Assembly (NCBI GenBank): GCA_038496445.1
Contig: JALMLS010000093.1
Span: forward strand, 248,001 to 312,000
Direction of reading: 5' to 3'
Origin: Trichosphaerium sp. ATCC 40318
Lineage: Eukaryota > Protista > Tubulinea
DNA length: 64,000 nt
The notes beneath the pieces were generated by a model. The model did no database searches. It was given only the letters and a program-made list of their open reading frames with translations, and was not told the DNA's origin. The position numbers were made by a program, and so were the translations under genes. Of this stretch, positions 7,606 to 49,221 are shown one piece after another. Position 1 is the first letter of the stretch. The number at the start of each line of letters is the position of its first letter.

Positions 7606-9740
7606 ATGTCCTTTGAGTATCCTTCTGATATTCTCATACACGCCGCGAGAACTTGGCCAAACCAGATAGTGCAATGTGGTGAGCCAATAAAGTTACCTGA
7701 GCAAGTTTTTAAAGCTAGACTCTAGGAGATGAATCTTTGGAATATAAGAAGCTTCTGGATCAATCTAAACTTGTAGCAGGAGCTTTACAGCAACGAGGAA
7801 TTAAACGCGGAGGTTTACTGCTTTCATTCACAGCAGACGCTTTCTCTAACTTGTTATGGGCGTTTGCGGCCAATTTTCTTGGTTGTAAAATATTGGATTG
7901 TGAGATGTTCGAAAAAGCACGTGATTGATTACTAAACGGGTTTTTTTAGTGCGACTTAAACCTCGTCAGGCTGTCATAGCTATTTGCAACGCTCATAATT
8001 TAGAGGTCAAGGCAATACTCACTAGACCCGGAGAGTTATTTGAAAGTCTTGACTGTGAGAATGTGTTCCTTGCATTAAAGTCGCAAGGTTTCGGTGAAAA
8101 CATCAAAATACTTAAAACTGAAAACATTTTATTAGGTTCTATCCCGAGTCTAGAACACTTGATAGATGAAGATGTTAAGTTCGCAGAAGTAAAAAGAGAT
8201 GTTAAAGATGCGTGCATAATGTGCTGTACTTCTGGAACAACAGGGAACCCAAAAATTGTGGTGCACTCTAATTTTGCTATCTGCGGAATAATCAAAGCAA
8301 CTCAGACTAAAACGTACTTAGTATCCTCTCATAAAGGTATACCTGTCTTTACATCTTCATTATCAATCCAACCTTTAATTAACTAGATACTGAACTTATG
8401 GTGATTCCAATGATGGCTACTGTAACCTATGTTACAGTATTAAAGTGCTTGAACCGTGGAGTTAAACTTGTTTATGCAAAAAATGCAATGGATGTACGCT
8501 TTTGAGACTTCCTATACCTGTACTTCGAATTGACAAATATTCATTTCTTTTAGTACAAATCAGCATTGCCTCTTATTGAGAAGCATAAAGTGACAACGTA
8601 AGAATCTCTGTTAGTGTATTTTTTTTCGCAATTTTTTTTTAAACAGAGCTCTACCCCTAGCATGATTGCTTGGTCTCAGATTATACTGTCGTTTATTGGA
8701 AATGATCAAATAGATTTCTCAAGTTTAAAAAAAGTTGCCATTGCTGGTATGAAAGTACCACGAACAACCATGGCAAAGGTACACTTTTTTTTTTTCAAGT
8801 TAATTTGATTTTAAGTGTTTTGTTCAGATTCTGAAGAAGCACCCAAGTATTCAGTTTTCTATTGGTTATGGATCATCAGAGGGAATGTCATTTGCATGGA
8901 GCAATGTTACCACTGGATTAGAAGAAGGTCTTGTTCCCTTTGATTTTGTCAGTATCCAAATCCGTGATTCGAATGGCGAAGTATTAAAAGACAGTGGTAA
9001 AAGACAATCTTGCTTGTATTGCTTTTTCTGACTGTTTCTTAGATTCTGGTCATATATGGATTAAGACTCCTTTTGTTGCTTCTGAGATTATAGGAGCCAC
9101 AAAGGAGTTCTTGAAAGATGGCTGGTGAGTCTTTTGAGGCGTCTATCTTACTTGTTGATATCAACTGATTGTACAACAAACAGGTTAGATACTAGCGACT
9201 ATGGGTATCTCAGTGAGGGTAAGGTGTATTTACAAGGTAGATCTGATGTACGTAAACTTTTTTTTGTTGAGATACAATTGAAAGAGTTAACCACAAGAGC
9301 TAAAACCGGTTCGTTTATTTTAGGATCTGATAATATCTCAAAATGGAAAGAAGTTTGGTGCAAATACTATTGAAGACAAGATGCTGCAACTCAAAGGCAT
9401 ATCAAAAACAGTAGTATTTGGTGTACCCGCTACAGAGGCAAGTTTGAAAATCAACGTCAACCATCGCAAAGTTTGTTCTGAAGTTGTTAATCTCTTTGCA
9501 TAGCTCGGAGACTTTGTGTGCGTTGTATATGAGCCTGAGGCTGGTGTTACTGTTTCACCAGAACAAGTGAGAACTCACTATAAAGAACACTTTGAAAACC
9601 TTGGGGTAGCTCCTGTGGAGTACTTTCTTAGCGTACAGAAAATCCAATCTACAGATAGAGGAAAGATATCGAAGAAGCAAATAAGGGAGTCTATTAAACA
9701 ACGTTTAAACCTCTCTCAACAGCAACTAAGCAGGTGGTAA
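7606..9740 (+). CDS. AMP-dependent acyl-CoA synthetase/ligase (ANL superfamily, 4CL/luciferase-like)
   Basis: AMP-binding motif CCTSGTTGNPKIV, GYGSSEG, GWLDTSDYG...YLQGRSDD.I, terminal GKI lysine; about 10 introns, including a GC-AG intron at 9438-9503. Confidence 0.9.
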
Positions 9741-16755: not shown

Positions 16756-30787
<14,032 letters not shown>

Positions 30788-44662: not shown

Positions 44663-47600
44663 TTACTGAACGTAAGCAGTGGTTAAAATACATTCACTAA
44701 TGCTCTTAGAAAGTGTTCCCAAACAACTACTTTTCGAGCCTCTATTGTACAATCTCATGAAAACAGTGAAACATTCAACTTGTAGCTGTTGGGCTTTCGA
44801 CATCTTTACAGTAACTGTATAACTACCTTTGTGTGCAGTTCTAATAATATACTCCTGTGGGCCATAACCTAAATAAGTCTAGTGAGTATCTTTGGTTGCT
44901 ACTGCTCCTTCTAGGACAAAAAGTTGTTTTCTAAATTTGTGTATTGTTACCTTTGCAATCTGTTGACATTGTGCCTCCACTTTTTGTCAAGTTATTGAAC
45001 ACATTACAAATCTCTCCAGACGGTTCGGTAACATGTAGTTCTACATTAGCTGTTGGATGATTCCATGAGATTACAACTCTAAAACAAGAATCAGCGTATT
45101 CTGTCTTTTCTTTTTGAATAGAATAGAATCATACCGTAAATCACAGACTTCCACCATAGGCAAGAAAGCAGTGATGTGGCTATACTTTGAGAATAGTTCG
45201 CGCAATGAGCCATTGTGCTCCTTTAACAACAAAGCTTTCTTGTAGATCCGGAGGAAATCTCGTAAAGCTATAACTTCCACATGTTTTAGTTGAAATCTAA
45301 TATCCCATTTCGTAGAAATGACTTGTAGCAATAACTCAAGACTCTCTATTGGTTTTACATCTTCTAAATATAAAGCAAGGTCCCTACAAACATGTCAGTA
45401 TAAATATTACGTCTAAAAAGTAAGTACCAGTAAGATAGAGGTTGCTCCTTGCTTAAATCAAGTATTTTTCTTTGAACTTTTTCAACAATGGTGTTTGCCA
45501 ACTGATTGCCAGATTCATGTTTTTCTTGAAACTCTTGACAATGCCAAGCAAATTGACGATATAACTCGACATCGTTTATACGAATTTCGAGTAATGTTGA
45601 TAGCAGAAACGGGTGTGAAACAGGAGAAATAGGTCCAATGCTATCCTCAACGAATTGTTTTACTGTTCTATAAATAAATTTAGTTCGTTCCCATCTGTAG
45701 TCCCACTTAATGGAACACTTACTTCGATGGTTGCCAAGAAGCATTCTCAAGTATGATTTTGACATCTTTGATAGGTATCTTTATGACATTGTCAACATCA
45801 ATAAACTTTCCATAACTTGCTGGTAGCTGTTTATAGAGCCAATATGGATTATCAGTAAGCTTTTTTGCTGGCTGTTTGATCAAATACCTTTCACCTACAC
45901 TTGGATCCACTGGTGTACTATCCCACCTGCTTGTTCTGGAAGGCGTTGGTGTACTGTTTCTCGGTGTTAGTGTATCCCACCGACTTTTCTTTTGGGGTTG
46001 GTTTGCACCCATAGTAGAGTGCGGCGTATCGCGTTTTGGTGAGTCCCATCTGCTTTTCTTTTTCTTTTGTTTCTTCACAGTGTTGTATCGTTCACGTTCT
46101 GAATTCTGTTGTTTTGGCAGCTTTGATCTCATCCTCTTAAAGCTAGAAAGTAATAGCGACTTCTCTGTAGTACTGGTCACTTTGCTTCTGTTCCTAGCGT
46201 TAAAAGGTTACAATCATTATTACTAACTAGTACGTACTCAACAGTTGACGAACCTCGCGTGGATTCCAGTAAAGACAATGACTCTTTGAAGGCATCCAAT
46301 CTCCTGGTGATAAACATCGGTTTCTTCTTGAGGTACGTGCAGAACCTCTTCGTTCCATCTGGTTTTTAGCCTCAGTGGAGCGTTGTCGCTTTGCTGGTCT
46401 GATTAGTTCCTCATCACATGATTTTTCTACACTATCGACTGGAAACATTTTCCCTTTGGTAGATAATCTAAACACGTGTTTGCAACAGGCATACAGCAAG
46501 TTCAAAATTTGTACCTTTTATCTAAGGGTATGACATATCCCATTGGACTCTTCCAGTTTGATATACATGGTGGTATTTTCCAATCGATATTTGCTCCGTT
46601 CTTTGATATTTTTCTCGGAGGAGAAGGTATTCTTGGTGGCTTTCTAGAGTCATCATCTGCTATAACTTGAGGTTGTGGTTTGTCTAGCCGTTCCCATGCT
46701 TCACGTAAAAGTTGTTCGGCTATTAACAGAGTTTAGTTCATCCACGTGTCAAATGCTTTATGTAAAAGTTGTACCTGTAATTGTAATTTTAGATGGAGGC
46801 TTCTTTTTTACATACAAGCTCCCTCGCATAGTATTTCTATGTCGTTTACCTAAAATGAAAGTAAATGTATGCAAGAAAAAACAAATAACATAGTTTTAGT
46901 TTTATAGAGATTGTACCGTTTAAATGACCCAAATATTCATCAGGGGTGTTGTGTAGCGTATTGCACATGAATATTATATTTCATGTTTGATGTACTCTGT
47001 TAAAGACGACAAAACAATCATTGATGTCTCTGGTGTTATAATCTGATATTTAATTCCAATTTCGGCTACTTGAGATTGATCATCAATTTGATTCAATTTA
47101 CCACGTGCCCAATCACGTATAATACTATTTTCAAAGCAACAATGTGTAGCCTTGTTTATATCTATTTTGATTGAATGTATTACTCTCCCTTGAGTACCAA
47201 AATGCAACGAAACATTTGCATCTTTTTCGCAATCCTTGATTCTACCTACAGTATCATAGAATGGATGACCACTGCTTTCTTCTATTTGAAAAACTACAAC
47301 TTGTCAGCACTACCACTACTTTTGATATAATATCATACCATTATCAACTATACAACCACATCCGGTAGCATACAGTAGCCCAAGACGTGTATTTTGTACG
47401 AAGATATTTCTTGCAATAATGTTGAAAGAGATTGAACGCTCATTTGATATATCCTGAAATGTGCCGCCACTCCTTGACGACCACTTCCTCAGTAAAGTCT
47501 TATCGATTTTCTTACATGATGTAATACAATGAACGGGTTTTGCAAACATTGAAGGAACAAAGTTTCTGTTCCCAATTGTGTTAATGCCATCAGAAAATAA

Positions 47601-48942
47601 CAAAAAAACGTCATGTGAACTTTTTGTATCTGATAGAACCCTTGCCAAAGGCTCCAGGTGCGTTGCTCCAAAGTATTTATGAGACTTGATATATGATCAA
47701 TATGTGATACATCTTGGAAATCACGTGCATACAACACTGTTAAGTTGAAAGCATAAAGAACAATGTTTGATGGATTTAAGGTCGTCAGGACTTCGTTTAG
47801 GAAATTCAAGTCTCTAGTGGTTTCAGTTAGTATTTTTTGTAGTATTAGGTAGGTTGGATATCATTATTGACATACTTGGCAGCAGTGGCTTCGTGACTCT
47901 TTGAGATATCCCATAATATTCCAACTTTCATCGGTGATGCGAAATTTTGTATGGCGGCACTAATCGGAAGTATGTTACGGCTACAGAAGTATAAAAAGTC
48001 TTCTGAATGCTGAACTATACAAGGCATAATCTCTTTTGTTTCTTGTAAGGAAATATCACAGTAATTTTGATGAGGGAGTTTGCTAATACTAGGTTTGAAA
48101 TAAAACTCATAAATCTAAAAATATAATTAAAACAAAAACTCACTTATCAACTCTCTCAAAGTACCTCTTCATCCATACGTTTGCTGAAACCATGTGACTC
48201 GCATCCTTGTATATATATATTAGGTTCTCCTTTTGGAGGATCATGGACGATGCCAGTTATTTCCATATCGTTAACAGCGGTTGTGTTAAATGGAACTCTG
48301 AGGGAGCTTTGATACCAACCTTCTCCTAATACATGATTATCAATTGGCGTGCTATAACGATAATATCCATACCTGTTTTGGTTTCTGTCTTTAAAAACCC
48401 ACCAATCTTTAATAACATAACACGTGACTCCAACTTTTTCATGTGACTAATCTTAGTACGAAACACATTACCAACAACATTCTCAACCAATCCAGTAGTT
48501 TTTTTATCAAACATCTGTGCGCTTACATCAAAAACACTTTTGGCTAAACACAAGTCAGAGCAATAGTTACATTTTCATTCCATGCCATACCTTTTTCTTT
48601 CTTGACTACAACTGCTTCGACAAGCGTACCATCAACGGACATGCTGTATTTCTCGATTTTTGATTCTGCAAGAAAAAGTCAGTTAACGATAATCCCTTTG
48701 TCAGTCAGGTTTTTTGCATACCATTCGCTGTGTATAGCTCAAATTCAGCTTCGTCGATGTCGCTGGTGGTGTTGTTTGTAAAACAAATTCGAATGTCAAT
48801 TTCTATCGTGTATTAACGTACATGGACGTTGTTTAGCGTACTAACCGTATTTAAATGATTTAACTGCGAAAGTAATTGAAACATTGTCAACACGAAGACA
48901 TTTGTCTGAATTGACATCTCTTATCGCTATAGGTGCTTCCAT
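44663..48942 (-). CDS. VIT - vWA-like - helical/TPR-like - DUF2135(YfaP-like) protein with spliceosomal-motif insert; apparent frame lesions
   Basis: VIT: FTN...EAEFEL...YSMSVDGTLVEAVVV.KEKA..VF...GLVE...GNVFRTKI. vWA-like: GILWDISKS, YFGAT, LFSDGINTIG, YQIITPETSMIVL. Then EQPLSYWDLAL, KWDIRF...EVIAL. DUF2135: DLRVVISW...VELHVTEPSGEIC...TKSGG..S.D..GYGPQEY. Confidence 0.8.
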
Positions 48943-49221
48943 AGCAAGTATACAATTACACAATAAGACAGAAAAAAGGATTGCTTCTTCGATTTTGACA
49001 CCCAAAGTCCCATTCAACAAAACACAAAACGAAGGAAATTACTGACTCCTACTTCAATTAACTCAGCAAACGATAACTCCACACGAACAACAACATATCC
49101 AAGCTTCTTTTATTGCAATAACAACGTACATCTATTGGAAGGAGAAATACAATTCGACGTTTTTCAACTTTTTTTTCTGTTTTGGTTTTTTTTTTTGATC
49201 AAAACTTGAAAGTATCTTACA

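Follow-up and report, generated by a model that had tools for sequence, protein, structure and literature searches.

Short copies of spliceosome-protein segments in the predicted linker of a bacterial-type VIT-vWA-DUF2135 gene of Trichosphaerium sp. ATCC 40318

Proteins in which VIT, vWA, TPR and DUF2135 modules follow one another are found in bacteria, where they are encoded by single open reading frames (ORFs) of ~1000–1500 residues and carry names such as 'VIT domain-containing protein' or 'DUF2135 domain-containing protein'; many of the members fetched here begin with a hydrophobic signal-like N-terminus. Intracellular VIT-vWA proteins of eukaryotes (human VWA5A, PARP4 and Dictyostelium Vwa1) likewise have a VIT and vWA head without a secretion signal. 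These two domains were proposed to mediate protein-protein contacts; the C-terminal region of the eukaryotic proteins is different, and no peptide patchwork has been described for them (PMC10539598). The gene analysed here is located on the minus strand of a 64,000-nucleotide stretch of Trichosphaerium sp. ATCC 40318 DNA (contig JALMLS010000093.1, positions 248,001 to 312,000; this whole stretch is called the window below, and all positions are given in its own numbering). It extends with introns from the ATG at 48942 to ~44664. The order of its modules is that of the bacterial proteins and homology to them is recognisable in both halves, but the protist gene is interrupted by spliceosomal introns and no signal peptide was seen in its first exon. 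Moreover, the bacterial members keep a conserved segment after the vWA domain, whereas the protist gene is devoid of it and contains eukaryotic peptide copies instead. As judged by sequence comparison, this insert is composed of short copies of conserved segments that come from no fewer than three, and probably from four, spliceosome proteins.

By analogy, the design most resembles the integrated decoys of plant NLR proteins (NLR-ID) and the bait region of alpha-2-macroglobulin, although on another scaffold and with strings of short peptides. NLR-ID proteins likewise carry copies of host proteins in an unrelated scaffold, with different cargo in different family members, and they are the model for the bait function discussed below. 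The protist scaffold does not belong to the NLR proteins and shows neither a death nor a signalling domain; its cargo is several peptides of 25–60 residues from different proteins and not a folded domain, and an immune role would be assigned to it by analogy. The bait region of alpha-2-macroglobulin is likewise an exposed variable segment between folded modules which is offered to an attacker. However, the protist gene encodes no thioester or macroglobulin domains, and its cargo is more than merely protease-sensitive, being homologous to specific host proteins. E. coli YfaP, which we take to contain a DUF2135 domain, is presumably encoded next to the macroglobulin YfaS. Mosaics of short fragments of several unrelated host genes in one transcript unit are also known from Pack-MULE and Helitron elements and from retro-chimeras. 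In contrast to these, all fragments of the protist insert share one stop-free frame inside the linker of a host gene, and a repeat search found no terminal inverted repeats or other transposon marks flanking the insert. No described protein with such a mosaic was found in full-text literature searches, in agreement with an initial annotation of this DNA, which knew of none.

The insert is encoded by minus-strand exons A (46968-46917), B (46849-46775), C (46719-46515) and D (46467-46234), followed by a 162-codon ORF (46207-45722) entered at 46193. The initial annotation had joined exons A, B, C and the region from 46467 onward into one GT-AG-spliced frame, and repeating this splicing returned the peptide as described. 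The lengths of the introns are, in order, 67, 55, 47 and 40 nucleotides (nt). The first of them (46916-46850, GTACAA...TTTTAG) shares the donor GTACAA and the acceptor TAG with the second and the third, and a CTAA-type branch site is present in introns 1 and 2. Intron 4 (46233-46194, GTACTA...GCTAG) is among the shortest of the local introns, and the single frame depends on it. The window is AT-rich (G+C ~36%) and abundant in short spliceosomal introns; those with GTA donors are enriched in it only at 45–65 nt and not below 40 nt. The spliced frame 46968-45893 comprises 289 codons without a stop, the probability of which by chance is ~4e-8 at the six-frame stop frequency of the window (0.0575). 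The encoded polypeptide has an isoelectric point (pI) of 10.5 and contains clusters similar to nuclear localization signals (NLS), including PAKRQR; with 72% of disorder-promoting residues its composition suggests that it is disordered.

The pieces follow each other in the order: half-finger of SF3A2, N-terminal peptide of CRNKL1, SNW motif of SNW1, ~125 unmatched residues and RWD-TP motifs of SF3B1 type. The joins between the pieces are situated inside exons B and C, while the introns cut within the pieces. All four parents named in the initial annotation proved to be the best or the only matches of their pieces in searches of Pfam and the Protein Data Bank and by motif, SF3B1 at the motif level only. 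Its statement that short conserved pieces and not the parent proteins are present was correct as well: the defining domain of each parent is incomplete or absent. As far as its sequence goes, the insert is not a member of the SNW1, CRNKL1, SF3A2 or SF3B1 families.

The most pronounced similarity is that of exon C to the SNW1/SKIP/Prp45 signature, which was expected from the initial annotation and was recovered in the search with Pfam SKIP_SNW (E 5e-13, 49.5 bits at a cut-off of 25). The match covers profile positions 41–89 of 158. The complete SKIP_SNW domain is not present, its conserved second half being missing after ...LDKRLSTKG; SNW1 chains normally comprise ~380–680 residues. The same piece matches Prp45/SNW1 chains of at least five species in solved spliceosomes (Protein Data Bank, E 1.9e-9 to 4e-4). 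The search of 1.84 billion representative proteins with exon C resulted in 351 matches at E<=1e-3, with 55–70% identity for most of the matches listed; the window's own protein was absent among those listed. The 41-residue piece VKKKPPSKITITAEQLLREAWER...PQPQ, assigned from the outset to the N-terminus of CRNKL1/Clf1, gave six matching chains when the Protein Data Bank was searched at E up to 10. These are without exception orthologues (CRNKL1, Clf1 or cwf4) matched at their N-termini, the best one at E 0.0024. The match extends over ~30 residues (chain positions 18–50) and is followed by the SNW piece and not by an array of HAT/TPR repeats.

The assignment of a matrin/U1C-type finger to SF3A2/Prp11 stood in part. 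The best match of the 34-residue piece MCNTLHNTPDEYLGHLNGKRHRNTM in the Protein Data Bank is indeed SF3A2 (residues 58–82, E 0.011), but only the second half of the finger is present. The match begins at the second Cys of the CxxC pair, with Ile at the position expected for the first one, and a stop is located just upstream in the same frame. Since the first Cys is replaced by Ile, the SF3A2-like piece cannot bind zinc as SF3A2 does. The basic-RWD-TP motifs of SF3B1 type were likewise confirmed as motifs, but the scores of the SF3B1 sequence itself are weak. A scan of the whole window in six frames found the pattern [SRK]RWD..TP three times, and all three occurrences are located at 46054-45931, within 45 codons. 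Both SF3B1 scores are below significance: E 0.11 for Pfam SF3b1 and E 1.1 in the Protein Data Bank, where SF3B1 is the second-best match with several stretches in 194–373. The piece is not accompanied by HEAT repeats.

The first two RWD-TP units (45964-45993 and 46033-46062) are 77% alike at the DNA level over 30 nt. Either local duplication contributed to the growth of the array, or the array reproduces repeats that were present in the parent gene. The tail ERYLIKQPAKKLT... was considered as one more part of SF3B1 and rejected, as it gave no SF3B1 match; by eye it is similar to the W-P-x-x-P-Y segment of the family, which the profile does not align. Motifs similar to BUD31 and Cwc25 in the ~125-residue stretch were dropped for want of support, and a match to TRADD_N at E 0.04 was regarded as chance.

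We favour, with a probability of about 0.5, the reading that the gene carries an open patchwork of spliceosome peptides in the linker of a bacterial-type scaffold, which displays them as surrogate ligands or targets, and that the present copy has one or two frame breaks. This reading is preferred because the pieces that could be recognised correspond to those linear segments which are most conserved in their parents, and because they are kept in frame. According to it, the pieces would have been patched into the linker as coding sequence and the frame of the patchwork would have been kept open by selection. By analogy with the decoys mentioned above, the scaffold may show the pieces as bait or decoy to factors that bind or modify the genuine spliceosome proteins. 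The gene would then be one member of a family which carries different cargo in this genome.

Another function may be considered for the same pieces. Motifs of the basic-RWD-TP class bind UHM domains, and three of them are present here. The NLS-like clusters and the high pI of the insert, as well as a first exon without a signal peptide, in contrast to the bacterial relatives with their hydrophobic N-termini, would be consistent with a protein which enters the nucleus via its basic clusters and binds the partners of SF3B1, SNW1 and CRNKL1 in order to titrate, tether or regulate them, acting in this way on host splicing. A cytoplasmic VIT-vWA protein of Dictyostelium is known to act via contacts with an F-box protein (PMC10539598). 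A finger piece that cannot fold argues against such a motif scaffold, and we regard it as quite improbable.

The 55-nt intron between exons B and C (46774-46720) would also speak for the display of the pieces as surrogate ligands. It is similar to the first ~57 nt of exon C (46719-46660), with a local alignment score of 20 against 7.2 ± 1.4 for shuffled sequences, a score attained by 0 of 2000 shuffles; the other introns of the gene do not resemble their next exons in this way. It looks like this intron was born by tandem duplication of coding sequence. The exon copy encodes EQLLREA, which is the CRNKL1 consensus from human to fission yeast, whereas the intron copy would read VQLLHKA and is heavily changed in its second half. 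If the duplication occurred within this gene, then selection presumably maintained the peptide and the open frame, whereas neutral sequence was free to drift. If instead it occurred in the parent CRNKL1 gene, the piece would have been captured as DNA together with its intron. This may be a clear case of an intron arising from duplicated exon sequence. The positions of all features are collected in Table 1.

Table 1. Features of the patchwork-bearing gene in window coordinates.
Feature	Position	Strand	Basis
N-terminal scaffold half: VIT-like exons and vWA domain	46978..48942	-	profile of bacterial relatives, tblastn; ends ...TPETSMIVLSSLTEYIKHEI
vWA frame break ~47697	47685..47710	-	one base short compared with family reading; alternative is 26-nt intron 47710-47685
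Scaffold/insert junction	46975..46985	-	vWA frame TAA 46977-46975; patchwork frame opens after TGA 46985-46983
Alternative 159-nt intron GTACAT...CATAG	46837..46995	-	splice-path search
SF3A2-like finger, second half (MCNTLHN...GKRHRNTM)	46827..46968	-	Protein Data Bank, best match SF3A2
CRNKL1/Clf1 N-terminal peptide (VKKKPPSKITITAEQLLREAWER...PQPQ)	46667..46811	-	Protein Data Bank; split by intron 46774-46720
55-nt intron, apparently a decayed tandem copy of the start of the next exon	46720..46774	-	repeat search, local alignment
SNW1/SKIP/Prp45 SNW-motif piece (SPPRK...WKIPPCISNWKSPMGYVIPLDKR; LSTKG after intron 46514-46468)	46452..46666	-	Pfam SKIP_SNW
~125 basic residues without family match	46076..46451	-	Pfam, Protein Data Bank; contains 40-nt intron 46233-46194
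SF3B1-like region: basic run, then three RWD..TP among TP/SP dipeptides	45911..46075	-	motif search
C-terminal scaffold half: ~85 divergent residues, TPR-like helices, DUF2135-type domain (HVTEPSGEIC...GYGPQEY)	44664..45910	-	

The patchwork is preceded by a vWA half and followed by a helical/DUF2135 half; this position, noticed already in the initial annotation, is borne out by homology to bacterial family members. The search with the DUF2135-like exon led to seven bacterial loci, among them L002 and L005, whose proteins comprise 1391 residues (L002:2182-6354) and 949 residues with a weak VIT match (L005:3589-6435). The L005 protein in turn led to 40 family members (e.g. P0152-P0190), most of them with VIT and DUF2135 and several also with TPR. 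A profile of 994 positions was built from 33 bacterial VIT-vWA-TPR-DUF2135 proteins and run against the 2050 ORFs of the window. It matches minus-strand ORFs in order, with positions 86–549 before the insert and 751–962 after it and with E-values of the exons down to 1e-13. Profile positions 550–750 are unmatched in the window, exactly at the patchwork. This gap suggests that the patchwork replaces the family's own linker, including the conserved segment that follows the vWA domain. The homology shows both folded halves as putative members of an otherwise bacterial VIT-vWA-TPR-DUF2135 family and the patchwork as their predicted inter-module linker. The membership rests on the profile from the bacterial relatives, Pfam DUF2135, VIT and vWA being below threshold on the gene.

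In the N-terminal half, Pfam VIT gives E 0.11 on a single exon, which in the family profile is aligned to positions 86–112 (E 1.6e-4 for the 2050 ORFs); for the bacterial relatives found from the exons of the gene, E of Pfam VIT is 1e-25. The exons of the vWA domain match the profile with E 6e-12 and 5e-13, and no Pfam vWA match was obtained on single exons. The DxSxS motif of the metal site is intact (WDISKSH), D-I-S-K-S being aligned to D-A-S-G-S of the L005 protein. The tblastn alignment of L005 residues 269–482 with 47690-46977 (E 1e-10) ends at the ...LVLESVDQYVEFEI motif of the family, and ...TPETSLLVLESVDQYVEFEI of the L005 protein is aligned to ...TPETSMIVLSSLTEYIKHEI, the last vWA codons before the stop. 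The family motif TPxTSLLVLE..QY..Y.I at the end of the vWA domain falls at the same place in the protist gene. The spliced C-terminal half scores 122.7 bits over positions 751–962 (tblastn E 4e-11). It aligns with the L002 protein through the helices into DUF2135, and HVTEPSGEIC is common to both. Pfam DUF2135 does not match the spliced domain of the gene; the L002 protein itself has E 1.3e-3 and 19.3 bits, which is under the cut-off of 22, with Pfam VIT above threshold.

In bacteria, the inter-module stretch begins beside the vWA domain with the conserved segment and also includes a part of low complexity. Its length in the 18 members with both landmark motifs is 134–431 residues (median 148), where the value of 431 is likely a mis-match of the pattern and the others reach ~260. 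A metagenome search with the alignment of the vWA end found 70 loci, all of them single long prokaryotic ORFs, and the three scanned have longer TPR arrays and no foreign cargo. A subgroup of the bacterial family members (L035-L051, metagenome contigs, several of them labelled human gut) comprises proteins of ~1250–1500 residues with ~680 residues after the vWA end. In the two members scanned with Pfam (L033 and L036), this part contains extra TPR repeats and no foreign domain. The gene neighbourhoods of the family in bacteria gave no functional hint. In the Thermoguttaceae genome of L005, an 842-residue ORF without a Pfam family (L005:6470-8995, plus strand) is situated directly downstream of the family member and may be a partner gene.

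The initial annotation had placed the insert within one VIT-vWA-DUF2135 protein. Its location in the linker agrees with this, but in the assembly the stop of the vWA frame precedes the ATG at 46968 by 6 nt, and this frame is offset by one base from that of the insert. Splicing of exon A to the vWA exon is not possible, as the stretch from 46995 to 46917 contains no AG that could serve as acceptor. A splice-path search found only one in-frame bridge across the junction, the 159-nt intron listed in Table 1, which joins ...SSLTE to NTMRGSLY and skips the SF3A2-like piece together with the family-conserved YIKHEI codons. A stop and a change of frame exactly at the junction, with an ATG 6 nt downstream, are what would be expected from a chimeric contig or from two genes read as one, the VIT-vWA gene ending at 46975 and the second gene starting from the ATG at 46968. 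Nevertheless, the two halves correspond, one after the other, to a single bacterial family (profile 86–549, then 751–962), the base composition is even across the region, and the insert is joined to the C-terminal half within the single 162-codon ORF. As for two genes, a promoter would not fit into the 6-nt spacer. We regard an artefact of this kind as very improbable.

The second one-base break is located inside the vWA domain, at ~47697. The vWA reading changes frame there, and a normal intron would not fit in; the alignment to the L005 protein is gap-free across an X placed at this site. Reading through this site gives a profile score of 87.2 bits, compared with 71.8 for the 26-nt intron 47710-47685 and 54.5 for a 187-nt exon-skipping intron. 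Ultra-short introns which would bypass the breaks appear unlikely, given the lack of enrichment below 40 nt with GTA donors and the 15 bits lost by the 26-nt intron against read-through. A candidate 29-nt intron at 7921-7949 on the plus strand (GTGATT...TACTAAC...T7AG) joins two AMP-binding-like ORFs in phase. Either the organism has ultra-short introns, if this candidate is real, or this is another site needing one added base. For a further apparent break at ~45129, a 44-nt intron (95.0 bits) and read-through (91.9 bits) are equally good explanations. The breaks at ~47697 and at the junction each need one added base. They fit either deletion errors of the consensus or recent mutations, so that the copy would be slightly mis-assembled or recently disabled. 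The exons of a BEACH domain in a large gene (28036-29582, plus strand) read through normal introns without a break, and a 541-codon ORF in the window shows none either; this weakly favours damage specific to the present gene over an assembly error.

Coming back to the display of spliceosome peptides as surrogate ligands or targets, a number of points weigh against it. The vWA half and the insert are in different frames as assembled (TAA 46977-46975, one-base offset), and there is the second break within the vWA domain. The single frame of the patchwork requires an intron of 40 nt, which is near the length minimum. The finger devoid of one zinc ligand cannot fold as in SF3A2, and the ~125 residues at 46076-46451 have no Pfam family at E<=1 and no meaningful match in the Protein Data Bank. 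Among the 8 exon C matches examined (out of 150 listed and 351 in total at E<=1e-3) there was no patchwork relative, as 7 of them are ordinary SNW1 proteins or fragments and one is a low-complexity repeat protein. No patchwork relative was found in the scans of metagenome and viral contigs with exon C and the vWA exon either. Word-index searches with the 162-codon ORF and the last vWA exon gave nothing, and exact look-ups of two window ORFs gave no match. Known signalling or effector domains are missing from the scaffold, and the bait function is proposed by analogy. Finally, the duplication which gave rise to the 55-nt intron could predate the capture and have taken place in the parent CRNKL1 gene, which would void the argument from selection.

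Part of these observations would also be expected from a neutral patchwork in a pseudogene. In this case the linker of the family would accept in-frame filler of any kind and would be a hot spot of patch insertion, for example of cDNA or short DNA captured in break repair, the pieces would be functionless and the copy would be decaying. The joins of the pieces inside exons and the unrecognisable ~125 residues are in line with it, as are the one or two single-base frame breaks, one of them within a conserved domain, the half zinc finger without a Cys, and the absence of an orthologue with the same insert among the exon C matches examined and in the metagenome and viral scans. The unbroken BEACH exons and the 541-codon ORF, weakly favouring gene-specific damage, point in the same direction. 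On the other hand, neither the 289 codons of the insert nor the exons of the scaffold as spliced contain an in-frame stop, and the splice signals are intact (GTACAA donors, CTAAC-like branch sites, TAG acceptors). The recognised pieces are the segments most conserved in their parents, with 55–70% identity to SNW1 of other eukaryotes, and the exon copy of the CRNKL1-like duplicate keeps the consensus while the intron copy drifted. Taking both sides together, we consider neutral filler rather unlikely. If it is neutral, the gene would be a record of a mechanism by which fragments of coding sequence are inserted at a particular site in the members of a gene family.

If, in line with the favoured reading, the displayed peptides are functional, the gene would represent an unreported way of building a protein, with short conserved peptides of several essential proteins placed side by side in the linker of a bacterial-type scaffold. 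It would point to a surveillance or regulatory system of protists and would show which peptide surfaces of the spliceosome it pays to guard or to mimic. More speculatively, and by analogy with NLR-ID proteins, such genes might form a lineage-specific family of sensors or traps on a scaffold acquired from bacteria, in which each member displays peptides of essential host machines, here of the spliceosome, so that factors of viruses or intracellular bacteria which bind, cut or modify these machines would hit the peptide copies first. This would be innate immunity by integrated decoys on a non-NLR scaffold and outside plants; at present we hold it to be unlikely.

At the 5' end of the gene, an upstream ORF (48927-49013, minus strand) starts with an ATG at 49013 and runs, in a different frame, across the main start codon at 48942.

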